Source: Phallusia mammillata | Taxonomy: Eukaryota | Direction of reading: 5' to 3' | DNA length: 64,000 bases | NCBI GenBank assembly: GCA_965637545.1 | Contig: OZ281500.1 | Coordinates: 7,192,001-7,256,000 of the forward strand | In this document: positions 13,801 to 37,800 of the stretch, one piece after another | Layout: the number at the start of each line of letters is the position of its first letter | How positions within the stretch are numbered: the first letter of the stretch is position 1 | Translations under genes and position numbers: made by a program | Notes under the pieces: generated by a model | The model's input: the letters and a program-made list of their open reading frames with translations, nothing else | Database searches by the model: none | What the model was told of the DNA's origin: nothing

Positions 13801-16800
13801 TCTGGTGTGTACAAAGAAGACAGCAAGATATTGTCTGTGCATTCAAGTGATGCTGCCACTGTTGTTGCAACTTCCCAGGTAACTATTTTCACCCAAGAAC
13901 ACCATTCCTGATTGGGAACATACAAATATTTTTTGCAGGGATCAGTGTATGTCTTGCATGAGTTTGTTGTTCGCAAAATTGTGTCAAAGCACATGGATAT
14001 TGAAAAACTGCAAGTCGGAGGTGGTTTGCTGGATAAGACTGTTGTGGGTCAGGTAGATAATGGTGCTATATTTGGATGTATTTATTTTGTGAATACATAT
14101 AAAGGCTATTTAATGTCAATTTTGTGTTGTTATCCAATCAGGTAAAATTGACATTCTCTGGTAACAAACTTGTAAAAGACGATCATCAACAAAGAGATGA
14201 CAGAGAATGTCGTGTACTGATTTTAAAAAAGTCAGGTGATTTAATATCATGGTCATCTTCACATGCAAGCATTGACAGATGTCAGTTTGGTATAAAACAG
14301 GTAATGATCAGAGCAGTAGCCCAAATTTGCAATAGCATAAATCCTAATTCTGTTAGTGCTGTCAAAAAATGTAGTATTTTCGCAAGAAATACTAAGACCA
14401 TTTAAATTTTCATTTGGAACCACCTGTATTAAATTAGATGAATTCTTCTTAAGTTAGACTCATTTTGCAGGTGCATTGGATAAGTGATATTGTTATGAGT
14501 AGTCGGGGCAGCAATGTGTTGTTTGTCTCTGTTGATGGAACAGCTTACATCGGACAGTATTCTGCTTGGCATCCTGGAAAGTCAAAGAAAAACCAGTCAC
14601 TCCACAAACAGGTTAACTTTTACTGTCTCTGCTTTAAGCATTAATTTGTGCAGTTTAAATACAACATGCATGAATTTTTTTGTTTACATTTTTAGGAATT
14701 TGCAAACAGCTTGGAACTATTGGAAGCAGATTCATCACAAACATTTAACTTGGAGCAAGTTCCTTGTGCCTTCCGCACTCATTCTGCAGTGTTGGGACCC
14801 AAAGGAAGAAACACTGCCATTCTTCAATCAGACCCACGGAATTTTGTTACCAATGTAAGCCACTATATCAGGGGCGGGCAACTTCTCCAGTCGGCGGGCC
14901 TGATATGGGAAAATGAAGTACTTGGCGGGCCGGATTCGTGAAACGATACACTAATCGCGTATTTATCCAGTGATTTAAAACGGATTTTTGACCACCTAAA
15001 CTAAATACAATCAAGAACGTCGCAATTACAATACAGTCCAAACAATCTAACTGATATAACATAAAATTATTCACCACAGCAAATTTAATGCATATACCAC
15101 AGACTTGGATACTGCTGAAACACTAACCACACTACATGTGTGGAAACAAAGGAAACCGTGAAAGCAGGCCACGCACAAGGTTGGCAGTTATGTCGTAACA
15201 ATGGACGTATGGTGCAATGGTAACAACGGCGGGAAAGTTTTTCTGTTATTGGGGAGCGTTACTGTTTGTTACAACTATAATTTGACGTAGTAAGCAAGTA
15301 GTGGGGGATTCGGCAGACTGTGGCCGCGGGCCACGTTATCATGTAAGACCAGAAACTGTCTGCGGGCCGCTCAAAATCCCGTCCGTATGTTGCCCGCCCC
15401 TGCACTATATGTTAAGATTCAGCAGTAACCATTATGTAACCCATTTATGTTGAACTTTTTTGGTTTTGTCTAGGTTCCATTTGTGACTGCAAGTGAACTA
15501 TCAGAACATCTTGGTGCTTTGCTTAAAGATGCAAATGATCGTGACATCCTTCATGACATAATCATCAGAGTAAAAAGAAAAGATAAACCAGATGTTACAT
15601 ATCCTGCTCATTCTTACATTCTTGCATCTCGCTCATCACTTTTTTACAAACTCCTATTATCAGAAGTCACCTCTGGTGAAGATTGTGGTGAAATTGTCAT
15701 TGAGAATGTGTACCCTAAAATTGCAAAGAACCTGTTGCAGTTAATATATACTGGCACATGTGAAATGCTACAAAGCAATCAGCAGTTCAATGAGGAGTTG
15801 GTTGAGCTTGGATTGTGCAAAGTTTACTGCGGAACAAATGAGAAATGCTTTGATGGTGATATCACCTCAACCAAATTTGGTAAAAAGGAAGAAAATTCGA
15901 AAGTAAACAGCATTACCCTGCTTAGAAATGTTGCTGTCAAGCTTGGTATCTTTGGTATCAAAGAAACTGTTGACAAACTTGTTGTACATGATGGGAAAAT
16001 TGTCAAAACTGCCAGTTTGCCTTCATTTACATTGAACAGAATGTTGCATCCTAATTTGTTTGACTGTGTCATCGAATGTGATGATGGTCAAACATTTCAA
16101 GCACACAGGTGTGTTTTGTGTGCTAGAGCACCATTCTTTCAAGGCATGCTCCTTTCTCCATGGATGGAATCCTCAAACATGAAAATTGGTGAATGTGCTC
16201 ACTTGAAGGTAAAATATGTATTGACAACATTGCTATATAACTTTATGCAAAAATGCATTACATTAAAATGTCAGTTCTTTTGTATTGTGTCACAAGTAGA
16301 AGTGAGTTGTGCGACATTTGCAATTTATACAGGTTCCGGTGCCATCTGATGTTTTTCGCTTTGTGCTTGACTTTGCTTACACTGATTCACCCACTTCACT
16401 TCATGGGGCCACATCAATTGAAAGTCTTTGTGAAATACTGGCTTCTGCGGACTTGCTGTTAATGGACAGACTGAAACAAGTTGCTGAAGTGCAAGTAAGT
16501 TCCTAGGGATAGACCAAATCTAAAAATGTTCTGTTTGGTCGAGCACCGAGCATCTCATGTGAATACTCGGCCGAGTACCACCATCTCATGTGAATACTCG
16601 GCCGAGTATCACCATCGGTGTATTAAGCTGTACAGGCTACAAAAGTATTTTCCTCCATCTAACACATTTAAAAAACAGTCATTTTTGTTCTTGATACCCT
16701 TTTGAACACTAGTTTCACATCTTAGCAGGGCATGAATATGCAATTTAATGCTTGGGTCAGTTTGTGCAACTGCTCAGCCGAGCACTGAGCATCAAAAACA

Positions 16801-18923: not shown

Positions 18924-20636
18924 TTATAGAAACGTTCGATAAACATCATTGCTCACAAAGCTTGCTTGGCAGTTGGGGCAGTGTTTTGTGCCTGGTTTTG
19001 AATCTGTGGATATTTTTAGGCAACATGTCCGGCACAGTTTGTGCTCACACGGCAATATGTACTGTGCAACTGTTGATGACAAAAACGCATTGCATTTGGC
19101 ACAATAAATGTTGTTAGGCTTCTCATTGTTGTTGTCGAGTTGAATTGCCCGAAACTGTGCATTTCTTTGGTGAGCTGCCAACAGTGTTGTTTCAAGGCTA
19201 CCATACACAGATTTGTGGGTGGACCTGCTTGATTCTCCAGAATCTAGCTTTCTGATTTTAGCATTTGAATGTCTCTCACAATCTGATGGTCGCTTAATCT
19301 GTGTACTGGGCTTTGAAGAATTTGTCAGTATTACACCTCCATTAGAAGGCATTTTGCCAGAAGACAGTGTATCCAATGCATGTTGATCAAGTCTTAATTT
19401 AAGTTGGACATTTGGTACAGGCTTTTGGTTTTCTGTGAAAGTTATGCCGGTGAAGGGGTCAGATGGAGGCCGACCCCATTCTGCTTGGGCTTGAATGTGC
19501 TTGTCCAGTGTTCTTTGGTCAATAGTGTGACCGCTTGGCAGTAACACAGGGTTTTTCATCATCACACACACAAGAGGGTCAAGAAATTGTTTTGGGATTG
19601 AACCATTATCCATGTTGGTTTCATCATTTGTATTTAAAACATTCTTTGCATACATTACAGAATGTTCAGGTAACTCTTCACTTTGGGATTTGCAAGAGAT
19701 TGAATTTGGTACTGAAAATGCTTTCTTCATTTTGAGCAAGTTTTTCCACTTTTGGACAACTTCGAAACTTAGTTTTTTGTTACATTTAAAAGATGGACAC
19801 CCCCATATCTCCAAAGCTTGCATGGATGGCACACTTCCCCTCAACATCTGCAAAATCCCAACCTTTATAGCAGTTATGTTGGTGAATCTGCCTTCCAAAG
19901 TTATTATTATTTCATTTTCCTCCTGTTCACATGATGAACTGGATAAATGATAACTGTCTCTATAGTTAGGGTTGACAAAGGATATCACAGACTGCTTCGT
20001 TACAGTGGCTTTGGCAGTGTGGAAAGATATTTCGTTTAAGCATTCCAACACATTGTTGCTTTTCCTGAAAGTTAAAAAAGAAATTTACAATACAACTGTT
20101 GATTTCGGAATGCAAACTCACAAGTACCCACAAAGTTTTTTGTGATGAAAGCACTTTGATCAGTTTAGCACATTGTTGTCCTACCCACGGCTTTATCACA
20201 ATCTTTTGGAGTTGAATTGGAAGAGGAAATTTGATTGCAACATATACTGGAACTCTGGCGAATCTTTCTGCTTGAAATCCCTACAACAAAGTTATGCCCA
20301 AAAAATAGATAATGTTATGCGCTCAATGGCTCAAATATCAAAGTGGTGCAGGTCTCTCCAAAGCAACACAATGGTCACAGCAAATGTGATTCTGTTTCAA
20401 AGTTAACTTACCTAAATTACAATACACAGTATATTTTTTCTCTAAAAATAAACAGAAGTCAATTCCTTGTGATTTAAGAAACGATTTACTGCATCACTTA
20501 TACGCTAGTTTCCAAAAAATACCTTTCGACGTTTGTGCTCCTCGTTTGATATTAGGTTCGATACTTCATAACCATCCGAACTAACACATGAACAGAAGAT
20601 ATCAGATAAATCACCATACGAAAAATTCATTGCCAT
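18924..20636 (-). CDS. UBOX5: U-box domain-containing protein 5 (RING finger 37), 3 coding exons
   Basis: Exons 20636-20523, 20280-20132 and 20064-18924. N-terminal SSDGYEVSNLIS, U-box IPKQFLDPLVCVMMKNPVLLPSGHTIDQRTL...PSDPFTG, and C-terminal RING (CAKC...LPCEHKLCRTC...CPNC). Confidence 0.85.
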
Positions 20637-22458: not shown

Positions 22459-24593
22459 CTATAGGTTCGCTATTTTTTCCACCATCTTTCGCACAGCAAC
22501 CACTTGTTTGCCAATGTTGGATGCTGTTAGAGAAAGAAATCAATATAGTGTATTTTGTTAACACTCTTTAACGATTCACACATTTTACAACATTTTTTTT
22601 TGTTTTTTTTTTGGTAGCTTACCGTAAGCGCTTCCAGTATAGCCCCACCTGAAAAATATCCAATTCCGTTTCGAACTCGTGTGTAAACTATAGCTTAGTT
22701 AAAACATCAAGGCAAAACTTACCAGTCAAAGCACCCATTAGGGTTTGTCATTAAGTTTTTCTTTACTTGGGGATAAACCACAATGATGTTGTTTAGTGCA
22801 GCTACTTCATTGTATCCAGTTTCCGTTACGTAAGTCTGTCCCAAGTATTCCTCCCCTTGCTTGCAGCCATGAAATGCAACATGTAGCTTGCAAGCTGGAA
22901 CAGGCGTAAAATTATATGGAAGAAATTACTTTATTGTACACAATGATTGTAGTGGGTTTTGGTAACGTTTATATGTCCCTTTAGCATTGTTTGAATGATA
23001 TTTTATGTTGCGATTTGCTTTTGCGAACAGTTGCTCTTGTTCAAAAAATGTTTTTTTTTCACATTAAACCTAGTTTGTTCTCTCTAAATGCTCTTCCTAT
23101 AAATTGTTTTCACTTATAGTGCTTACCACAATTCGTTTACTGCTTGTATAGTGTGCTACCTGTGTTCCTGTCAGCACATCCGTCAGGAACAAAAATGTAG
23201 CCATCATCAGCAAGACCAATGTCTGAAAACCCATTATTGCCAAAGAATTCTGTCTGGTCAAATGTGAGTATTGTCCCAGCCAGCTCGCCTGTTGGATAAG
23301 TTGCTTGCTGTAGAAAAAATAAGCTTAACAAGTAAATTTTAGGTTCCGTTACAAGATAGGGTTTGAGATTAAAATATACCTGCAAGCCACCATGGATGAA
23401 TTCAAGCATATCGTACGCAGCGTCATAATTACAATAGTTAATGTAATCAGTGTTCAGCCTGTCGCACTGGCCTCCATAACTCACTGTAGGCTGAAAAAAT
23501 GTGAGATATTTTTTACAAAAAGACAACTTGTCGTAAATGTTTGATATACTTACAAATCCGTGTTCGCCTGGAATGTCAAACACCGTCTTGATGTTTCCCA
23601 CAGACACAAATTCTGAGTAGTACTGTTCAGCTTTATTGACCACTCCTAAGTGTAAAAAAAATCTTTCGATGGTCAAAATCAGATTGAAGTGTAATGCGAA
23701 AAGGACTTAAGGCAATAAACATGTAAAGAAGGGTTCAATCATCGTTTTAAACGGGCTAGAAATTCGGGCCCGAACATGAACTCGAAATTTGGTTGGAATA
23801 AAACCCGAATTAAACCATAAAAATAAGTTTGAGTTTAGGCACGAATCAAGCCCGTTTTTTTAAACTTCATCCCGAACTCGACCAAAAAAAAAACGGCGCG
23901 ATGCAACCCTGTGTTCATTGTACTCTTATGTATAAGGGTGTACCTGGATCCACTACAGAGTCATCAGTGCCGCTGTACAAATACACTTTATCGTCTGTCA
24001 AGAAAGACAACTGGTCAGCGTAACCGGTCAGTACAGTGTTGCGAGTGATCTGCTGCAAATAAGCGACGTCAATCAAATTGGGTGACGTCATGCACGCGCC
24101 TGTGGCCGTCATAAGATTGTTTTTGGCACACCAGAACGGACCTGCAAAAAGTTGACAAGAAGTGACAGAAAGTTTGTATTTTTCCGTTTATGTCGTCTTA
24201 TATATTGAACTTATAAACGTTTTTCGCCCATCTTGTTTTCTTAGTGTACACACAATCATGTTTGCAGGGAGTAAGCTGATTGAAATGTTGTGCTAGACAT
24301 TTGGGGTTAATTTGCTGACACACTCACCTCCTGCAAGTACCCCGACTCCAGAGAAAATCATGGAATGGGAAATATGCATTTGAACCGCCATGAAAGCTCC
24401 GGCAGACAGACCGCTCGTGGAAATCTGCGTGGCGTCCACATTGTAACTTTCTAAAGCAACAGAATCACATAAAAAGTGGTAAATATTAAAGTTATGAACA
24501 GTGAAAACATGGACCATACCTACCTAAAGGTGCTGCAGCCGATTCGCCGGTTGCCAGCAAAATGGTCAAAACAGACAAGAACAAAATCTGCAT
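22459..24593 (-). CDS. Secreted poly(3-hydroxybutyrate)/PHA depolymerase homologue, type II catalytic domain, about 334 aa, 9 exons
   Basis: Exons 24593-24524, 24450-24328, 24141-23944, 23645-23554, 23490-23380, 23307-23160, 22894-22723, 22648-22623 and 22523-22459 join in frame with GT-AG sites (1005 nt). Signal peptide MQILFLSVLTILLATGESAAA; lipase box SGLSAGAFMAVQ; AGGPFWCA; YSGTDDSVV (Asp); GEHGFPT (His); LHVAFHGC oxyanion motif; NNIIVVYPQ; NPNGCFDWWGY. AATAAA (minus) at 22410-22415. Confidence 0.88.
23748..23883. mobile_element. Fragment of the hAT MITE family seen at 46887-47199
   Basis: Shares aaacgggc...gcccga...aatcaagcccg motifs with 46887-47199; no intact ends. Confidence 0.5.
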
Positions 24594-25228
24594 CGTTGAC
24601 TTAGGAATAAATCTACTCATCGAATAGCTACAACCAAGGCAAAGAATACGTGGTTTAAATCATTTTCAATCACGAAAACTATAAGTAACGTCACCCAAGT
24701 TTATTCAAGTAGGTTAAAATGGCTAAGACGTCATAACTTTTTTTGATATTTTTAAAAGCTGCAAATAACAAAAAATAAAAAGTTACTCAGACAGGTCTTC
24801 CCGATTGCTCGCAACCCACGGACATCAGCATACTTAACAGGCCAAATAGTTACGAAGTCAACAAATGACTCAAAAAAATCCTTGAGAACTACACCAGCTG
24901 TTGATAAAACTGCACAGTCACTCAATAAACTTAAGTTGCGCAAAAGTTTAAATATTGGCACCCAAACTATTGTTTGCATGTAGTGCGCAACAAACACAAA
25001 GTTTATTTTTTCTGTAACTCTTCGTGTACCAAAACACGGAAAATGACACGTCATATGATTTGTTTGTCGGGTTTTTGTTTGCATTTTTCATAAAAAAAAA
25101 CAATGTCAAAACCTTTTAAACTTCATTGCATTTTAATTTTAAATCCCCCAGTTTGGAATGTAGTAGTTTAAACTTTAAAAACAAGTTTCACTGAAAAATT
25201 GTAATTAAAGGTTTGACACTGGAGGCAG

Positions 25229-25252
25229 TGTTCCATAGCAACGCTTCATTGG
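25229..25252 (+). promoter_or_regulatory. RFX X-box plus inverted CCAAT box upstream of DNAH3
   Basis: TGTTCCATAGCAAC (25229-25242) with a perfect TAGCAAC half-site, followed by ATTGG (25248-25252). X-boxes are the established RFX sites of ciliary genes. Confidence 0.6.
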
Positions 25253-25826
25253 CTACTGCAGAAAAAAATCCGGCTTTGATGTAATTTGTGATAACATTGT
25301 AAGCCGATGGTGTTGTTTGTAATAGTATTTAATACTTGTTGCTGTAAATCTATTTTGTTGAATAACAAGTGAATGCGCGAAGATGTTAACAACTATCCTG
25401 TTTTTGTAAAAAAAGTGAACTCATTACCAATAGGTTACAGATAAACTTTAACAGTTGTACTTGCAAAAAAACGATTTCAGCATTGGTAGGTGAAATGCAG
25501 TTTAGTTATGTTAATGAAACTATAGTTATTTACAATTTTTGATCATTCATTATCTTTCACATTTGTCCATGTAGTAAAATTGGATTAATAAGGAATGGTT
25601 TGTGATTGTATTTTTTAAAGATATTTAAGAAACATTGCTTCTGAATAGTTTTGCATGATTGCATGATATCAATCTATGTGTAATTTGGCACCAATGTAAA
25701 CAAAGCACACGAAAAAACTGCAATAAAAAATGCAGAGGGCAAAGGTATTGTATTTTGTACACATAACATTTTTTACATGTAAAAATTGCTGAAAACATTT
25801 CTATCCCACAGTTTCAGGAAAGCCCT

Positions 25827-28800
25827 ATGCAGAGCAACACTAAATCTAATGGCCTGTCAGGATTGCCTCAATTGCCACCTGAACAAACAAGCCATGATTC
25901 TGAATTATACCAGGTATCTCACAAATTAAATAAAAATGTTGTTTGTTACTGATCTCTGTAGGTTGTTTTTTTATGATTTTAGTATCTATTTTTACCCTTG
26001 TCTTTTTGTATCTTAGATTGTTTTGAAAAACAGCATTCATCCCCCAATTATGCAAGGTATGTCCTGGACCTTGTTATCACCATTTAAAGAACAAAGACAC
26101 CATCGTTCTCCTAGTGAATCTATTGCAAACAATTATACACCATCTGCAGCAGACATTAAAATTCGAGACATCCCTGCCAAGTCAGTAACAGCTTTAACTG
26201 TCAATATGTGATTTGTCCATTTAAAAGCCACATTTTTGCATCAATTTAAATGTGATTTTTGGAAATTTAGATATAAGTCTTTGCGTCGGACATCCATGAA
26301 TGCTGGAATATCAAAATCAGTTGGGCCATCTCCACCCAAATCACCAAGAAAAATGACATGTAAGTTCACAAGGAGTGCAAAAGTTTGTGGTAAAAGCATT
26401 ATATTACCAAATTAAATACTTGCAGTTGGAAAAGCTCCACCATCACCAAAGAAGAAATTTCGGGGTGAGGGCACTCGAGATCCAAGGTAAAATGCACTGT
26501 TTTTTTGTAACAATGCAAGAAAAATACATTTTGTAACTTTTTGGACAGAAATGACTCGCTGGTTTTGTATTCGCCCAAAAAATCCCCTAGAGGGCAAAAA
26601 ATTACTGAAGAAGAACCAATGAATGGGGTAACTGAGGAAGAACATCCTCCAAGCCGCCCAATGTCCCCTATGGAACAGATGTCTATTATTAAATCAAGTG
26701 ATAATGAAAAAAGTGCAGCAGCTGAATGCTCTGAAAAAGATTTGGAGGTGACATGGATAGTTAAAAGTTTTTTTTACTTTTTTTGTGCTTGTTTTTCACC
26801 TTTGACTTTGTGCAAATCCCCTCAGGTAATAAAAATGACTTATCGAACAAAATATGCTTTCCAGAGATACCACTATTACATCACAAAAGGAATTGATTCT
26901 CGGCAACTAGCTGGGCCACCACCTGGACAAATGGGTCGAGTTGAAGAACACCTGCCAGAAAAATTGAAGGAAAATTCAGACTTGCACAGTTTGCTTGGGG
27001 ACTTGAAAGAAGAAGTGCTGACTGACTACGATTTCAGTTATAGAAAGTCAATAAGTAAGGGAAAACTTAATAAGTTTTAAAGTACACTATCTATATTTTT
27101 AATACTTTACCCAATCAAAGAATCAAGTTTTGAGTCAAAATTAAACCAACAAGATATCTTTAAATCAATTTTTAACTCCTTTTTAATGTTTAAAAATGTT
27201 GTTAGTGGTAGAGAAAATGTTGTTAGTGGTACTTTATGTGTAAGCTCAGCAGTGCATGTATATGTTTCAAACCACTTCTGTTTGACAAAAGACCATTGTT
27301 TTCCTGCACATACCCTTTAAGAATGATTTCTTTACAATTGTAATGTGAGATGTGCTGTTGTGTGCCGAAGCCCCCACTGTTTGTTTTATAATATTCTGCT
27401 CTACAAACAATACACAACAAAAATGTATAAATATCATTCATAGTTCGTTTGTTGATACTTGATATTTATATTTCTTGACTTGTTATATATTGTTTTTGCC
27501 TTTGCTTGGCAAAAGAGAATGACATTTTTTTTTTTTTTGAAACCAGCTCATATGTATTGAACGTGCAGTAGATAAATGTTTATGTCACTTTTATTTTAAT
27601 TTTATGCAAGTTGTGATGTATGTTTTACACATAGTTATTGCTTTTTTAGTTGACTACATTTTAAGTGATGAATCTGAAAAAGCAAGAGTTAAAGTGTCAG
27701 CGATTCCAAAGCCTTTTATGCTGAAAACCATCCGTGCACCTGTGCCATGGAGGGGTGCTGCTTTGACAGCCAGAGATTTTTGCAAACGAAGCCTTTTTAC
27801 TGTGAGCCCTCTTATGTTGCATCTGCAGAACTTGTGGTTTGACAGGTGAATATATGTTTTTTTTTAATCTTTGACAAACCTCTTTGGACAATTTTGGCTC
27901 ACACAAGTTTAAATCTTAAGGTTAAACTTTTTTGGTAAAATTTAACACTGCAAAAAAACTATCTCATAAAGTATTTTGGAAAAAAGGTCATGATCAGCTG
28001 GTGTGGTAAAAGTTAACAACCAATTTCTTCACAATCTTTCAGATTTAATGACCTCCGATTTGTAAACGTTGAGGAGCTGTTGGAAGCAGGGCTGCCCATG
28101 CATCCAAACAAGTTTGAGGAGCTGGTATGTAATGTTATTTTTGTTTGGCTTGGCACAGTGTGTTAATATTTTTTGTTTGTTATAGAACTCATAGTGCATT
28201 TATTAAAAATGCATACTTATCACTGACAAATTGTAAATATAACTGCTTTTCACAGGATCTGTCCCTCTACTAGTAGGCTTTTTTAACAACTTTGTGTTTA
28301 CTGATTTTGAGTCAGAAGCATTTACTTCTTTATTATAACTTACTTACAAATTGTGTAACATTTTGCAATGTTTTGCACACAGTCTGCAAATAAATATCAA
28401 ATAATTGTCAAATAATTCGTTTTCTTCATAGGAAATTTTGTGCATTTGCGTTTTTCTATTTTGTTTTAAATTGCTAGTGCCCCGCCCTCGTACGCCCTAT
28501 AAGGGCTGTGTGTTTGCGTTTATAAATACACACAAAGCGACATATTGCTTGTTTCACAAAGGTGCTGACTCATTGCGAGCGAACGCGCGATGTTTTACTG
28601 AAACAATGGATTCCGTCGGCAGTGAAACTTTTTCTTTTACACAAGGAGTCGTGGATGCATCTTGTTCCACAAAACGACAGCGACAGCACCATCCAGGTTT
28701 GTGAGACATAATAAATACTGTACTTTCTTCGGTACTCTTTGCTCTGAACTTAATTTTTATGTTTGTGTATTGTCATATCTGTTAGTTGTATGTTTTCTTT

Positions 28801-31800
28801 TGAACCCCCACCTCTTTACGTAGCACGAGTTGCTAGGACACCCTCGACTTGTGCCACCAACTTTTCCCAGAGTCGTGTTTCTACTTCCAGTGCACCAAAC
28901 TCATTCTCTTGTGAACTCCTATCACATAACGCTTCATAATATGATGTAGCTGCAGCGCGTTTATTCATGATCCACCAATTGTGTCCTTTACTATTTTGTG
29001 CTCCATAACGTCTCAACGTTGTCAAGCTATTTCCGGCTTTATGATCGTTTCAGTGAAATTTTTGTCGCCAGTTTTCTTTCACTAAGCGAAATTAACTCAA
29101 CTAAACTCAAAGGCCAACAAAGTGTGGTGACAAGCGGATTTGCAGTTTTTTTTTTCAGACTAAAACTAACAAAGTGGGCCGAAATCCAAAAAGGCAACGT
29201 TCAAAAGTAAATCTCCACCAAACCTAAAGTCAATTGTAGCCATGTTTGCTAATATTTAGTAAACGCCCAACAGGAAAATTGTTGAGTTTACTCAAATCTT
29301 TAGGTACAACAGCCAATGTTACAGGACATTGTAATTTTCGTTCTCTTTTTTGCTCTTTGTTCTCCTGTTGAAGGGCTTGAACTTTTGTTCGCCTTTCGAG
29401 ACGCACTTAAGAATCCTCGAACAATGTTCACGGAAAACTTTAAATCGATTTACGAGTCCGACTTCCCCTCATTAAGTCATGCCCTGTCGAGGTTCTTGTC
29501 TGCCCTTTGCTTGACCATAAACTTTCCGCTTTACAAGGTTCAAAGCAAAGCACACCTGTGGGCTTTGGCCCTGGCCTAGAACATCAAAATTCATCACAGT
29601 AACATGTGATACAGGATATGTGTTCCGCAACTATTTTTTTTCACGAACATACGTCCGTATTTTAAAGTACTCACAATAGTCAGTTTTGACATAGTTGTTA
29701 AATTTTCCCAAAGTAAATTTTGTCGGTGATATGAATTCGAGAAAAATATATCCCAACCAATGCAGCCGCCGATAACTGTTTTTTTGTTCTTAAATAAAAC
29801 TGCATTCTTAGCTAGAATTTGTAAGATTTTTGCTTTGTAGGTTCAGGAATTTTTTGCTTGCGCGGCCTCTCTGATGTCGAACCAGCTTCGGGGAATGGTC
29901 ATTAACTCACTCAGCGACTTTGTCAACTTCTGGAAGGCGCACGAGGTAAGTGGTTTAAAAATACAACGCACCACATTCGCCACGTGTGGTAGTGTTTACA
30001 CAAACCGGACAAGTGTCGAACTGTGTAACTTTCACAAAAATATAAGAACAAGGTTTCTGAGCCTGTTTTAGTGTCAAAGACAAATCGAGAAGACAAATCG
30101 AGAAGTACTCATAAGAAAGATATTTTTTGCATTACTGTATTGCCAATACATTAGTGACATTTAGAATGGTTATCAAGCGTTGTCGAAAAAGTGGCATTTG
30201 ATTGTAATTTGGTAAAAACATATAACCTTAATTGCCTTTTTACAATGATCTAACAAAACCATTTACCAACGAAACAAAATAATGACAAATTTACTGATGA
30301 ATTATTATATTTTTTGGTGCTAAGCTTAATTCATATTATAGGCTGCAAAGTTTGTTCTTCCAACTACAATTTAAAATGCAAATCTAACCTCTGAAGGCAA
30401 CAAATTAACATAAACACAACAAATGCCTTAACATTAGGCTGGCAATGATTTTGGCACAACGTACGAGGACCTCATGTACTGTGTCCGGCCCGTCATGCTT
30501 CTGCAACTACAAGTTCGCGACACAAAGCTGTTCTTCGACCCAAGCTTTCCAGAATGTCGGGACATCTTGTTGAACTGCTTCTCACACATCACTGCAGCAG
30601 CCGAAGCCATTCCCAGGGTAAAACAAGTTCCAGTAATTTTAATCTGTACGAGTTTTGTGTGCATAGTGTTATATCTGTCTGTAGGTTAGATCAAGGTATA
30701 TTATGGATTTTCTAAAACTTTTATACCCCTGAGCGTACCTACACAATAAATTTAGGGCGCGCCATCTGTAATGTGGAAACATTAGTCATTAACGTTAAGG
30801 ATCCTATCATATAAATTAACTTCTTTGTTATCTTTGGGCATTGTTTAACTATCTTCGCCGCTGCAAAACACCATGTACGACGATTAAGAACCATTGACTA
30901 AATTCCCTGACAGGCCTGACTAAATTTCATTTCGCTCAATGTATAAAACTTTACATCTTTACAACGCGATTCGTCCAAATATTAACTCAAACAAGACACG
31001 TGGGTGCAAGTTTATTATTAAAGTCAGACTGCTATCATTTGATTGACGTCGCCGGGTAAGTTTTATGAGTATCTGGAGTGTGTTGATGTTGGACTGAGTA
31101 AACACGGAAGGTCGGTGTGAGATAAAAGTGCAGCGCGCGGAATGCTCTTGAAATGAGAAATCGTTACATTTGTTTGACCTCGATTTGGCGATTCGCCGAA
31201 ATAGCAATCTGGGAAAGCTGATATTTTCCGTTCTGTACTTACAGATAGAGAAGGGCTAAAACTGAAATTGTTCTCAATATTTTCTATTTATTTAGGCCGA
31301 AAATGTTCGTGATATTACGGTAGTTGAAAAAATGCGACACTAATAACCCAAAATTTTAACTGTTTTGCATTTTAATGACACTCCCTAGCCGAATTACTGT
31401 AATACAGTAAAAATACTGTACGAATTTCCTCATGTGTTATTGTTATGGTGATGGTTTGTGCCGGGTATTAACAATAATGTTCTTTATTCGATTGAAAATA
31501 CTTATCTTTGTAAATAAATAATTAGATTTATGACCCTAGATATTCAGGTAAACTTAAAACAACACTTCAGGTACTTAAGACTTTTACACATTCCCTTTGC
31601 AAGTACATAATTTTCCACCTGTTAGGAACCACCGCTCTAAAACAATTTACAACTATACAGTACATCAATAAAGTGTATGCCAATATAGATGAATAATTTA
31701 GCAACTATGATATGTACCGTAGTGAACAATATTAAAGGAAACCGAATGGAATAAGTTGCCCCACCTTGACTTAAAGTTTGTTCAAATAGCAAACTAAAAG

Positions 31801-34800
31801 TCTAAGCTAAATTGGAAAGATCTTCTCAGATACTTTGCGGGTTTGACACTATTTCTCTAGCAAGTACGGTTTTGTGTAACACATGATTTGTTGTAGGTTG
31901 AATGCGATTTGTTTCCGGAGATGCGTGACACAACCCTCATCTTACGAACTGTGAACCCAGATGAATTATTAGTCAAAGAATTCGTCGACACAGCCATGAA
32001 TATATTCAAGTCAAACCTGATCGGCCCCCAAAAGTAAGATCACATCTGCTCTAGCACAGTATTGTGTCAAATCAATCGGCAGCTTAAAAAACCTACCCGC
32101 AGTCAATTGTCTTCCTTTGTTAAATACAGACAAATTCAGTTGATCAAATAACCACTTTGTCAAGCATTTTTATGCAAATTTCCGCAAAGCGATTTTTTGA
32201 ACCAATTGCCACTATTGGGATTTACAATATCTATACGATTAAACGGTTTATGCAGTTAACCGGATTCGCATTGATAAATACTATGCATTAAAAAAAGTTT
32301 ATCAATCAATCAAAGCCACTATTGTCTCAAACGAACGAGAAACGGGATGTAATGGTTGGCACTATGTTACATGTATTTAGATATCTGGATGTTTACAAGA
32401 AGTACGAGGACCTTCTGAACAACAAAGCCGATATGGATGTGATTCAGTTCCTCAAGGAGGAACACACGCTTGATGAACACGTGGTCATGATTAAAAAGTT
32501 TGATGTAAGCAAATACGGAAACAAGATCTCTAGATTTGTTTAGACAAATCCGGGTAATCGCAAAAACCGTGTAATTGCAATCAGATTTTTGAACCGTATC
32601 TGACTACTGCGTCCCTCAATCGCATGAAGAGATTGACAAATGTCAAGACAATTTTGCAAACAATTTTTCTATGATTGAATTTGCAGAAAACTCGTTCCGA
32701 AATCATGATTCTTCGCATCAACGTTCCCCTCAGCTTCTTCTGTCTTGATTGTTCGGAAGTAAATGAGGAACACGCCATGCGAGCTCAGAGGCTTAAGGAT
32801 CGAATTATTTTACACGAAATCGAACAAAATCGCGAGTCGAACAAGGGGTGAATAAATTAAGAAATTCAAAACGTGAAAACAGTATTGTTTGTAAAGTTGT
32901 AAACATTTGACCTGTTAACTCTAGTACTATAATTTGGTTTGTTGAAAACTTACGTAATATACGCAGTTGTTTCAAAAACGTCTTTCCAGTTACCTAAGTA
33001 CGGTAAAGACATTTTATTTAATAAAGCAAGTATATAGATTTATGACCGCAAAATACAATCTTGGGTTGTTTTTGAAGATATTGTTTTGGGGGCCCAACTT
33101 TTATTTTCTCTATTAACACTTTGTACATGCTTTGGATACGAATTTACTCCTAACCAAGTTTTTTAAAAAGAGATGTCCCACGCACGCCTGACTGAATCAC
33201 AAGCCGATATAATAAAAATCTCTATGCATAAAAAATCTATGCATTTTTCTGTTTGATAGCATTTGCCATGAGTATGATGTGATTGCTGACCGTGTATCGG
33301 AGATGCCGGAGACCACAGTGGAACTTGTGGCGCTCGTTGATTTCCTTAAGACTTCGAACGAGGTTACAATCCATGAGCTGAAGGAAAAGATCGGATGGGC
33401 CGCAGAAAGACTTGGATTTCTTCTCGACTACGCCACATTGCCTTGTAAGTTTGCAAAAATATCTTTACGTTTTGTTGTCGCATTTTTCCTCAATTCAATC
33501 TTTTTTGGTTTTGATTTTTTTAAAGTTGTATATTTTATGACCCAAATACAAAACTTTGAATACAAGGAACTTTTGAAAGAGTTATTGTTTGTTTTACAAT
33601 TTGTTGATTAGTATTACAGCGTTTGTTGGCCAATGCTTCAAGTATCAGTGGGAAACAGTTTAATGTACTGTGGTTTTTAATTTAATTTGTGCAAATTCTA
33701 CTGGATGAGATTATAGTTTACACTGTGATGACGATTTACGAACATTGCTTTAAATTGTTAGTTTTACTTTAGACGAGGACATCAAGCTGAACAGTAACGT
33801 GTTCCACTGGCCTGACCAAATCCACAGTGTGTTTGAGATCAACCGAAACCGACTGATGAACAGACGGGAAACAGCTGAAGACAAACTCAAAAAGAGGTAA
33901 GGCATTTACCATCTAAATCAAACAGGTGTAATTCATAAGAAGACAAAATATAATTTGGTTCAGTCAAATATCATTACTTCGCTTCTTTTCCTGGTAACAC
34001 CTAAAAGTATTTCCTGTTAACTATTGTTTATGTAACGTTTGTATTGTAGTTTGTTCGCATGAAGATGTTACTTAAAAAAATACTATTGCAAAATACAATT
34101 GAAGTTACATAAACTTTCAGAGTAAAGGAGTTCGAGGAGACTTTGAACGGCTACAACAAAGAAGTTGAGAGTTTTAAAAAGAAAGAAGTTGCGAGTCCCG
34201 ATGAAATGCAAAGGAACGTTGACAAACTAAACGATCTTACGAAATCACTCGAAGCGGCAACAGAAGAACTTGAGGTTTGTACCAAGTTATTATCAAATGT
34301 TTGTAATTGATGACCAGTTAAAACAAAACGTTACAGATGCTTACGTTTAAGTCCTCGTTGCTGCTTGATGAAAACTTTTTACGTCTGGTTAGATAGTGTA
34401 AACTGTGTTGTGTAGTGTAAACTTATTTAATCACGAGTCACCAGAGACTCAGTATAAGGGCTTCTATTTAAATTGGATGCTAAAGATGCCATGTACTTAG
34501 CTGAAATATATGTATCTTATAACAACAGTTGATGACTTCAGACGTATCAAAGTTTCCAATCTAATTAGATTGTGTTGGAAATGTTTTTCTACCTTTTTAA
34601 AATTTTAGAGTTCTAATTTTTTCGCTTCGGCGATCTGCGTTAGGCGATATACTTTTTGGGATAAAATGCTCCTTTTGTTTGTTTGTTTGTGTTTGCTCTG
34701 GGCAACAAGCCTTTGCCAAACTTGTTCTGTGTATCTTATCTGTACTAGGCGGTTGCCGTTTGTTGTCGAACTTGGTAACAATTCTCGATTTTGCACAGGC

Positions 34801-37800
34801 AATAAATGAGGAAGAAAGACTTCTCGAGTTCGATGAAAGTTCATTCCCAATACTGCAAGCAATGTTCCAGTTCAAGCAACCATACGACAGTTTGTGGAAC
34901 ACAGCGTTGAATTGGAACACCAAGAACGAAATGTGGTTGAATGGTAAACGTTTAGCACATGACGTTTTAGCACATGACGTTTTTTATACATGTACATATA
35001 TAAGTTACAATACATGTATATATTTTTTCTGTTAAAATAGAAAGTCAAATTCATCAGTAAACATGGGGCCTATACTGAAACATGCTTGTTTCTTGGTGTT
35101 AATTTAGACACTTCAAGAATTTTTAGACAATTTGGGCAATAAATTTGGGGCTTAATAAAAGGTCAATTGCAATGGGTCAAATGGTGTCAAAGATTATTTT
35201 GTTTTCATAAATATATGGAAACACCCTTGAATTCACGTACGGGGCGTCCTACCACCGACCTCTTGATTACATTGAAATAAAATGCACATATTTTTAAGGT
35301 ATCTAAATCTCTGTGTGCAGGACCGTTTCAGAATCTTAACTCAGAAGATCTCGCTGAAGAGTTGGGTCAGATGTGGAGAACAGTTTACAAACTGACCAAG
35401 TCGTTTTCGGACGCGGCAGGTCCACGACGTATAGCTGAGTCAGTTCGCTCCAAAATCGACAAATTCAAACAGCATCTTCCCATCCTTACAACTATATGTA
35501 ATCCAGGCATCAAAGACCGACATTGGGAACAGGTTAGTTGAGTAGCACCTCGTCAAAAAGTCCGTTTCTGACGCTAAGTTTTACGATGCACCGGTTGTGT
35601 TGTGACGCGTATCTTAGGCTACATTAGGCGTTTCTGTCCGTTTGTGGCAACTTTTGTTATGCAGGTGACTTATATATGTCAAGTTATGGGTAATTGGAAT
35701 TCTCTTCTGTTTGCAGATAAGCGACATCGTTGGATTCGACATCAAACCAGAAGCCGACACGTCATTGCTGAATATGCTGGAGTTTGGTCTCAACAAATAC
35801 ATTGACGAGTAGGTTTGAATTTTGTATTCTGTGGTGCTGTGAATTTTGTGTTTTAAAAACATAAGCCTAACCTTACCCGAACACACTTACAAACGCTTTG
35901 TTTGGAAAAATAAATATTTTGTGTTTTAAAAACAAAAACTAACCCTTACCCGAACACACTTACAAACGCTTTGTTTGGAAAAATAAATAGTATCATTTTT
36001 AAAAGAAAATATATGTTGAATGAAATTTAATTTGAATTTAATTTAAAGAAGCTGTCTTTATGACCAAAAAACAAGCAAAGGCAACTTGTTGTGCGTTTGT
36101 ACGTTTTTTTGTATAATTTTTTTGTTGGTGTTTTGTTTGCTTTTGATAACGGTTTGTTGTTTATCTAATAACTAACACTAACAGCATGGAACGAATCGGT
36201 GTAAACGCTGGAAAGGAATTCGGCCTGGAGAAAAGCCTCGCCAAGATGAAAAACGAATGGGCAGAAGTCTCTTTCACCCTGCTTGAGTACAGGGACACGG
36301 TAACCCAAACATTTTGTGTGGCTAATGAAGTGTGACTAAATGTATTTTGTCGTATGCATGTTTGCTCTGAGTGGATTTGTGTGTTGTGAATATTGCGTCG
36401 TTTAGATTTCCTTTTGTTTAAAGCTTGTAGTAGGCTGCAACTAAATCGAAACGTTTGTTACCGCAATTATGGACCTAGGGTTGCATGTTGTTAAAGTATG
36501 AAAAGCAAACGCCTTATGACACTTTTGGTTAGCATGCCTGTCCATTCTAAAGCTAATTCGTCCCTCTTTGCGAGCTATTGAAGCAAAATCGTTTCAAAAC
36601 ATAAACATTCCACCAGCACAAAAATTATAAGCCACCTACTTGTTGCAGAGGTTAAATCGATAAATTTATGCCTCCTTTTATGATGAGCCACCGGTTTTTG
36701 CAGCATCGAGGCGATCGGCGCTCGGGCCAGCAAAGAATGGTCGCTTGAGAACGCTCTCCATAAAATGAAAACTGAATGGAGTGAGATGGACCTTATAATG
36801 GTTCCATACCGTGACACCGTAAGATATGTGTGGTGGAGTGTGCCACTAAGTTGTGTGGTGGAGTGTGCCACTAACCCCTAACACAAAGTTGACAAATATA
36901 ATTTCAATTGGTGATTTAATGGTGACTGGGTGGGAAAGGGTGTTAGGTGTAACTTGGAATGTTGCATGAGTGAAAGTTTATTTGGTATTAACTTGCGGTT
37001 TTGTAAAATTGTGGTGTTTTGAGTTGAGTGTTATTGGCAGAAAAAATTGTGGTGATGTTTTATTTTTTTTCCATTTTTATTTATTTTTTCACCATTTTCA
37101 AATCGTGCCAATTTATATGCTAACTATTGTATTTATTACTGTTTATGCAGAAATATGCTATTATTTATTGTACACAAAACATTTTAAATGGTTTTAATAA
37201 GACCAGAACGTTATTTTGTTTTAACACTTAACAAACTACAACTAGCTGATCAGAAAACCAAACATTCATGAGAAACAGAGAAAAAAACAGCATTAGGAAG
37301 TAAAGGTCCCAAACAAGAGTAAAGATGGCAGTAAAAACGTAGAGCAGAACAAAGACAAGCTAAAGATATAGTAGAACATAGTTTAACCAAAACAGCCGAA
37401 TATCAGTGTTCAATATGCAGGACATCTTTATCCTTGGTTCAGTGGATGAGCTGCAGATTTTGTTGGACGATCACATAGTAAAGTGTCAGACTATGAGAGG
37501 ATCTCCGTACATTGGACCTTTTCAGGAGGAGTTTTCGGTGAGGATAAACGCAGTTATACAGCAGTGATAGAAAATTAAGGAGGTTGCATTGAGTTGTGGT
37601 TGTCAAGTTTTGTGTCAGATTGGTCGGTTTTCGTCCACGAAGTTTTTGTTTTATTGGTGTTGAGGTAAATGCGTATTTTTTGGAGAATTAAGGTTTTCTT
37701 TGCAAAGTCGTGAGAGCAGATAAAACACTGTCGAGATTGTTTTGGTTTCAGGTTTTAGAAAGTAATGTCGTTTGTTTCAAGAAAAAGTTACACTTGATAA

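Follow-up and report, generated by a model that had tools for sequence, protein, structure and literature searches.

An intron-rich ascidian orthologue of the animal type-2 PHA depolymerase family

Gene model and surroundings

A nine-exon gene on the minus strand encodes a putative secreted hydrolase in the ascidian Phallusia mammillata. It occupies positions 22459 to 24593 of the window, the 64,000-nucleotide stretch of contig OZ281500.1 that we analysed (Table 1). Anchoring and joining the exons by script gave a 1005-nt coding sequence that specifies 334 residues and ends in a TAG stop. The first-pass annotation had proposed nine exons joining into about 334 residues, and the model closes exactly. 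All eight introns are GT-AG, giving 16 canonical splice-site dinucleotides, and every acceptor carries a pyrimidine-rich tract. The gene resembles the surrounding DNA in GC content and is single-copy in the window, as no second depolymerase copy was found within the 64 kb.

Table 1. Features of the depolymerase locus in window coordinates, with the matches of individual exons to the NF050059 profile.
Feature	Position	Strand	Content	NF050059 profile positions	NF050059 score (bits)
Exon 1	24524..24593	-	Start codon and signal-peptide-like leader; donor GT at 24523-24522		
Exon 2	24328..24450	-	Lipase box GLSAG, nucleophile Ser39 (codon 24406-24404)	4-42	48.8
Exon 3	23944..24141	-	Catalytic Asp125 (codon 23962-23960)	44-108	44.9
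Exon 4	23554..23645	-	Catalytic His159 (codon 23562-23560)		
Exon 5	23380..23490	-	Aligns to 2D81 chain residues 147-177	142-176	23.3
Exon 6	23160..23307	-	Aligns to 2D81 chain residues 181-221	180-217	26.4
Exon 7	22723..22894	-	HGC oxyanion motif (Cys258, codon 22865-22863) and NPNGCFDW; best-conserved exon	221-278	85.1
Exon 8	22623..22648	-	26-nt micro-exon (WGYTGSAY); Trp305 straddles the exon 7/8 junction		
Exon 9	22459..22523	-	C-terminal helix and TAG stop		
Putative polyadenylation signal AATAAA	22410..22415	-	44 nt past the stop, read from sequence		
Dynein neighbour, axonemal heavy chain (DNAH3 type), 5' exons	25818..35812	+	tblastx colinear with the Ciona dynein		

The neighbours of the gene are animal genes. 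Upstream, the axonemal dynein heavy-chain gene stands head-to-head with it. The downstream flank holds a U-box/DUF5918 gene and a BTB gene.

The predicted protein begins with a signal-peptide-like leader. Residues 1-13 are strongly hydrophobic (mean Kyte-Doolittle above 2) and the small residues ESAAA come next, so that hydropathy and inspection agree with the signal peptide annotated at first pass. An alternative in-frame ATG at 24620 would add nine residues (MSRFIPKST) that include Arg and Lys. That start would supply the leader with a charged n-region, and the leader is present with either start.

The rest of the protein carries the motifs of a type-2 depolymerase in the expected order. The lipase box GLSAG (37-41) comes first, followed by GTDD (122-125), GEHG (157-160), the oxyanion motif HGC (256-258) about 220 residues after the lipase box, and CFDWWG (302-307, with DWWG at 304-307). 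The same order is found in all animal and bacterial relatives. Eight cysteines are distributed over the 334 residues. The triad, type-II order, HGC and CFDWWG reported earlier all stand, with one correction: alignment places the catalytic Asp at D125 rather than D124. Across a 60-sequence alignment the Asp never varies, and conservation reaches at least 90% in the Ser and His columns.

Assignment to the type-2 depolymerase family

Profile searches with exon pieces point to a single family. NF050059 is the NCBIfam equivalog-level model for extracellular type-2 short-chain PHA depolymerases (dPHAscl), and exons 2, 3, 5, 6 and 7 match it in colinear order (Table 1). The five pieces sum to 228.5 bits with exons 4, 8 and 9 unscored, a sum to be read against a cut-off of 280 bits that applies to whole proteins. 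Whole orthologues exceed that cut-off: Ciona scores 365.5, amphioxus 295.8, toad 371, sponge 372.3 and sea cucumber 379.5 bits. Matches of the exon pieces to the type-1 model and to TIGR01840 are far weaker than those to NF050059. Pfam returned only sub-threshold noise on the pieces, PF10503 included; because just one of five whole orthologues reaches the PF10503 threshold, this null is uninformative rather than contrary.

Comparison with solved structures gave the same answer. The best match for exon 2, for exon 7 and for the stop-free stretch across exons 4-6 is the PHB depolymerase of Penicillium funiculosum (2D80/2D81); exon 3 alone matched nothing in the PDB. Exon 7 aligns to 2D80 at E 5e-11 and places Cys258 on chain residue 230, which is C250. 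Ser39 aligns directly (GLSAG against GLSSG), and D125 and H159 align, by way of the Ciona orthologue, to chain residues D101 and H135, which are D121 and H155. The alignment of the Ciona protein itself to 2D80 is full-length (E 3.7e-49) and pairs the Ser, Asp, His and Cys residues and the Trp of the crevice.

A structural model extends the comparison to the fold. AF2 models the Ciona orthologue at pLDDT 93.7 and pTM 0.91. This model superposes on 2D80 with TM 0.86/0.91, an rmsd of 1.8 Å and E 2e-35, and the next match lies at E 4e-3. The fold, a circularly permuted alpha/beta hydrolase, was thus examined on the model of the 59%-identical Ciona orthologue and not on the window protein. Together, the profile and structure searches, in both of which the type-2 PHB depolymerases come out best, support the earlier reading of the predicted protein as a member of the type-2 extracellular PHB/PHA depolymerase family.

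The Penicillium enzyme is the single close solved structure and a useful reference for the window protein. Its S39/D121/H155 triad, C250 and W307 correspond to S39/D125/H159, C258 and W305 in the window protein, and both are single-domain proteins without a substrate-binding domain. The fungal enzyme differs in its distance (about 33% identity to the Ciona orthologue) and in having 10 extra residues inserted ahead of the NPNGC motif.

Bacterial dPHAscl enzymes share the catalytic domain and differ in what is attached to it. Those of Acidovorax, Variovorax, Massilia/Duganella and Paucimonas have the same catalytic domain and motif order as the window protein. Across 52 bacterial loci, the lipase box precedes HGC by about 215-300 residues wherever the fragment holds both motifs. 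Over exon 7, the most conserved exon, bacterial type-2 depolymerases are 39-57% identical to the window protein. Most bacterial members reach 400-580 residues by adding a fibronectin-III linker and a C-terminal substrate-binding domain (PF00041, PF18370), whereas the window protein has neither. Exons 2-7 span NF050059 positions 4-278 of 305 and just 29 residues follow, so that no linker or binding domain is present, as the first-pass annotation had noted.

Searches of protein collections placed the gene among named animal relatives. A HMMER search with exon 7 returned 1252 proteins at E<=1e-3. Among the best 150 of these, blastp with the spliced protein found the nearest to be Ciona intestinalis XP_002119263.3 (P0003 in our set; 58.6% identity over 326 residues), which RefSeq names "poly(3-hydroxybutyrate) depolymerase-like". 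A word search with the Ciona protein gave 581 matches at E<=1e-20. The same RefSeq name recurs among them in sea cucumber, sea urchins, acorn worms, amphioxus, newt and axolotl. Further relatives in that set, unnamed or otherwise named, come from spadefoot toad, sponge, molluscs, annelids and the ascidian Clavelina, and the bacterial enzymes in it usually carry the added fibronectin-III linker and binding domain.

The window protein itself is absent from a collection of 15 billion proteins, in which the best match is 59% identical. A word-index protein search with the 189-residue stop-free read-through of exons 4-6 gave no match; conservation is lowest in these exons, and the length limits of that search drop most full-length relatives. 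In the ESM Atlas, exon 7 retrieved only short bacterial fragment clusters, one of them with PF10503.

Intron positions, synteny and descent

Most introns of the window gene are shared with distant animals. We placed exons exactly for seven annotated orthologues and the window gene, eight animals in all, on a protein alignment. Ciona has all eight introns of the window gene, with intron 1 off by one column and one phase. The sponge Amphimedon has seven of the eight at the same column and in the same phase. Window introns, those seven and others, are also common to toad, amphioxus, Owenia, Solemya and Seison, with six or more common to the toad, amphioxus, bivalve or rotifer relative. The intron after residue 199, the one outside the sponge's seven, is common to Ciona and toad.

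Two introns present in sponge, protostomes, amphioxus and toad are absent from both ascidians. This shows that ascidians lost two ancestral introns, which is why the window gene has nine exons. Small exons are conserved as well: a 26-nt exon sits at the position of exon 8 in Ciona, toad, amphioxus and sponge too, and the last exon measures 62-68 nt in six other animals. Exon lengths in Ciona (80/119/198/92/114/148/172/26/65) run close to those of the window gene (70/123/198/92/111/148/172/26/65). Independently of any tree, the intron map speaks for vertical inheritance from the animal ancestor.

Gene order within ascidians agrees with the intron map. The Ciona orthologue also stands head-to-head with a dynein heavy-chain gene, which encodes 4057 residues (L053 9259-1503), and tblastx finds the two loci colinear over the depolymerase and dynein genes. 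In both species the head-to-head pair is kept with about 0.7-1.2 kb between start codons. Synteny stops downstream of the depolymerase gene, where the Ciona neighbours differ. The shared intergenic region yielded no conserved non-coding sequence above chance when window and Ciona were compared by blastn. DNAH3-type microsynteny is conserved within ascidians.

Phylogeny groups the window protein with other animal sequences. A careful maximum-likelihood tree of 44 labelled rows (23 animal, 18 bacterial and three protist) recovers a tunicate clade, (Clavelina,(window,Ciona)), with support 100/98. A branch supported at 94/95 separates the 23 animal rows, without exception, from the bacterial and protist rows. 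A quick tree of 104 rows agrees, with 47 of 47 sequences from bacterial genomes on the opposite side. The depolymerase of the annelid Olavius likewise lies within the animal sequences.

Introns, synteny and tree together exclude contamination and recent transfer, and the gene was clearly inherited vertically from the animal ancestor. The first-pass annotation had argued against contamination from the introns and animal neighbours, to which Ciona synteny and the tree now add. The phylogenetic check that it proposed, ancient horizontal transfer against vertical origin, resolves clearly as vertical descent.

Published relatives, predicted activity and alternatives

The window gene is an ordinary orthologue of a published, database-named family and as such no novelty. 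Zeidler et al. (Nat Ecol Evol, August 2026) described 195 PHADs from 66 animal species in nine phyla, Chordata included, and the credits of their Fig. 5 list Ciona and Branchiostoma silhouettes (PMC13642032). About 75% of animal PHADs have signal peptides, and substrate-binding residues are partly conserved among family members that share 8-42% identity (PMC13642032). The animal ancestor is inferred to have had a PHAD gene, with low support at deep tree nodes (PMC13642032). Five animal PHADs, from Olavius, one sponge, one earthworm and two from springtails, hydrolyse PHB and PHB/PHV; the assayed enzymes include none from a deuterostome (PMC13642032). Our literature search found no other paper tying PHB depolymerase to tunicates.

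The enzyme of the gutless worm Olavius algarvensis is the best-described animal member. This type-2 PHAD has 333 residues, the active-site residues S42/D127/H167/C259 and a gene of ten exons (PMC13642032), against nine in the window. The window protein resembles Olavius and other animal PHADs in size, signal peptide, type-2 order, triad, oxyanion Cys, single-domain layout and many introns. The recent report of animal homologues, for example from a gutless annelid, to which the first-pass annotation referred is thus confirmed, but the novelty that it implied is weakened for a family that spans nine phyla including Chordata and whose Ciona and amphioxus orthologues RefSeq already names.

Our additions to the published account are modest: the intron-position map and the ascidian microsynteny. 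The main text of Zeidler et al. mentions introns for the Olavius gene only, and mentions neither synteny nor a cross-species intron comparison (PMC13642032). As a discovery the gene carries little weight, since RefSeq already names orthologues from Ciona, amphioxus, echinoderms, hemichordates and amphibians. The enzyme of a filter-feeding chordate would, all the same, be a sensible choice for testing the function of a deuterostome PHAD for the first time.

The gene very probably encodes the ascidian orthologue of the animal PHAD family, a single-domain type-2 serine hydrolase of about 34 kDa predicted to enter the secretory pathway and act on PHB. After removal of the leader, Ser39, activated by His159 and Asp125, would attack the ester bond. 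The substrate would be a denatured poly(3-hydroxybutyrate/valerate) chain accommodated in a hydrophobic crevice to which Trp305 belongs, and backbone amides around Cys258 would stabilise the oxyanion. Monomers or oligomers of 3-hydroxybutyrate would be released and could then be oxidised by the animal. Such an enzyme may serve digestion in a filter feeder whose diet includes PHA-storing bacteria. That the gene is transcribed in this species, and that its product is secreted, hydrolyses PHB and works in the gut, we infer from orthology, the conserved catalytic residues and the intact frame.

A protein of the same fold and family could nonetheless act on another ester (polyesters, oligomers, acylated sugars or lipids), making the PHB name a label. 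We consider this improbable, although the PHB-depolymerase esterase superfamily does include feruloyl and other esterases, and weak secondary matches to the feruloyl esterase 8iy8 and to TIGR01840 were seen. The lack of a deuterostome among the assayed PHADs and the partial conservation of the binding site (PMC13642032) also leave room for a different substrate. The family evidence weighs in the other direction: orthologues pass NF050059 over their full length, no other hydrolase comes near the PHB-specific 2D80 as a structural match, Trp305, HGC and the triad are conserved, and the five animal members that hydrolyse PHB range from sponge to arthropod (PMC13642032).

It is still less probable, indeed very improbable, that the gene is silent or decaying, an intact-looking relic that is not expressed. 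We found no RNA data set that contains the gene, and two candidate RNA runs of the species lacked its sequence words. These runs are small, however (17-34 million letters of contigs), and give no proof of absence, while the frame is uninterrupted, every splice-site dinucleotide is canonical, and all catalytic and nearly all invariant family residues are kept despite only 59% identity to Ciona. An origin by bacterial or fungal contamination, or by recent tunicate-specific horizontal transfer, has a negligible probability. Tunicates have famously acquired one bacterial gene, that of cellulose synthase, and the similarity of bacterial type-2 depolymerases over exon 7 would fit such a source. Against it stand eight spliceosomal introns, seven of them at sponge positions and phases, animal flanking genes, Ciona synteny, a GC content like that of the surroundings and a position in the tree on a side made up of animal sequences alone; introns and synteny refute it for practical purposes.

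The conserved head-to-head arrangement invites a further and doubtful idea. The depolymerase might share a bidirectional promoter with DNAH3, which would place the enzyme in ciliated food-trapping or gut epithelia. If true, the shared promoter would link PHA digestion to the filter-feeding apparatus. Independently of the promoter, an ascidian enzyme with demonstrated activity would be the first such deuterostome PHAD.

Sequence runs that do contain the gene are genomic. Two runs contain contigs identical to the window with introns in place, and the assembly was probably built from them. In other samples, intronless contigs of 1.1-1.3 kb encode proteins 44-47% identical to the window protein, and these contigs look like transcripts of relatives.

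Intron turnover and intronic repeats

Intron positions in the depolymerase gene record lineage-specific gain and loss within chordates. Across an alignment of eight animals, only the two ascidians and the toad share the phase-0 intron that follows residue 199 (intron 5 of the Phallusia gene), and the nearby amphioxus intron sits three columns away. Both ascidians also lack two ancestral introns, those after residues 211 and 262. Two other introns, 3 and 6, contain short interspersed repeats. Each stretch is matched by further genomic contigs from the same two contig sets that match the window, after which the contigs diverge; a search for internal direct or inverted repeats found none.

Features of the depolymerase locus and of homologous loci
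Feature	Sequence	Coordinates	Strand or position
Depolymerase/dynein intergenic region	window	24594-25817	between divergent genes
Upstream in-frame ATG	window	24618-24620	
Intron 5	window	23380 / 23307	
Repeat in intron 3	window	23779-23865	
Repeat in intron 6	window	23032-23054	
U-box and DUF5918 protein gene (UBOX5/RNF37-like)	window	18927-20051	minus; downstream of depolymerase gene
BTB-domain protein gene	window	15483-16346	plus; downstream of depolymerase gene
Owenia fusiformis orthologue (P0013)	L059	3001-11766	
Branchiostoma floridae neighbour gene	L054	3633-9017	same strand as amphioxus orthologue
Candidatus Thiosymbion homologue (ectosymbiont of Catanema)	L048	3001-3186	

Flanks of the depolymerase gene

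The depolymerase gene lies head-to-head with a DNAH3-type dynein gene, their start codons about 1.2 kb apart. Ciona (L053) keeps this layout with a spacing of about 0.7 kb, and blastn found no conserved non-coding block between the two species' intergenic regions. Within the Phallusia region, the upstream ATG, if used as the start, would extend the leader by MSRFIPKST, giving it a positively charged n-region. On the other side, the U-box/DUF5918 and BTB genes show no synteny with the gene that follows the orthologue in Ciona.

Possible paralogues and a symbiont homologue

In Owenia, protein alignment places GMAAG at the lipase box of P0013, replacing the nucleophile serine with alanine, and a second PHAD-like gene adjoins the P0013 gene; P0013 may be a catalytically dead paralogue. 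Immediately upstream of the amphioxus orthologue lies a 340-aa gene without Pfam matches, which may be a tandem paralogue.

Among bacteria, the Candidatus Thiosymbion ectosymbiont of the nematode Catanema is a relative of the Olavius symbiont and carries a type-2 homologue, in which the lipase box falls at residue 53 and the HGC motif at 358. The enzyme reported for the Olavius symbiont is type-1 (Zeidler et al. 2026, PMC13642032).
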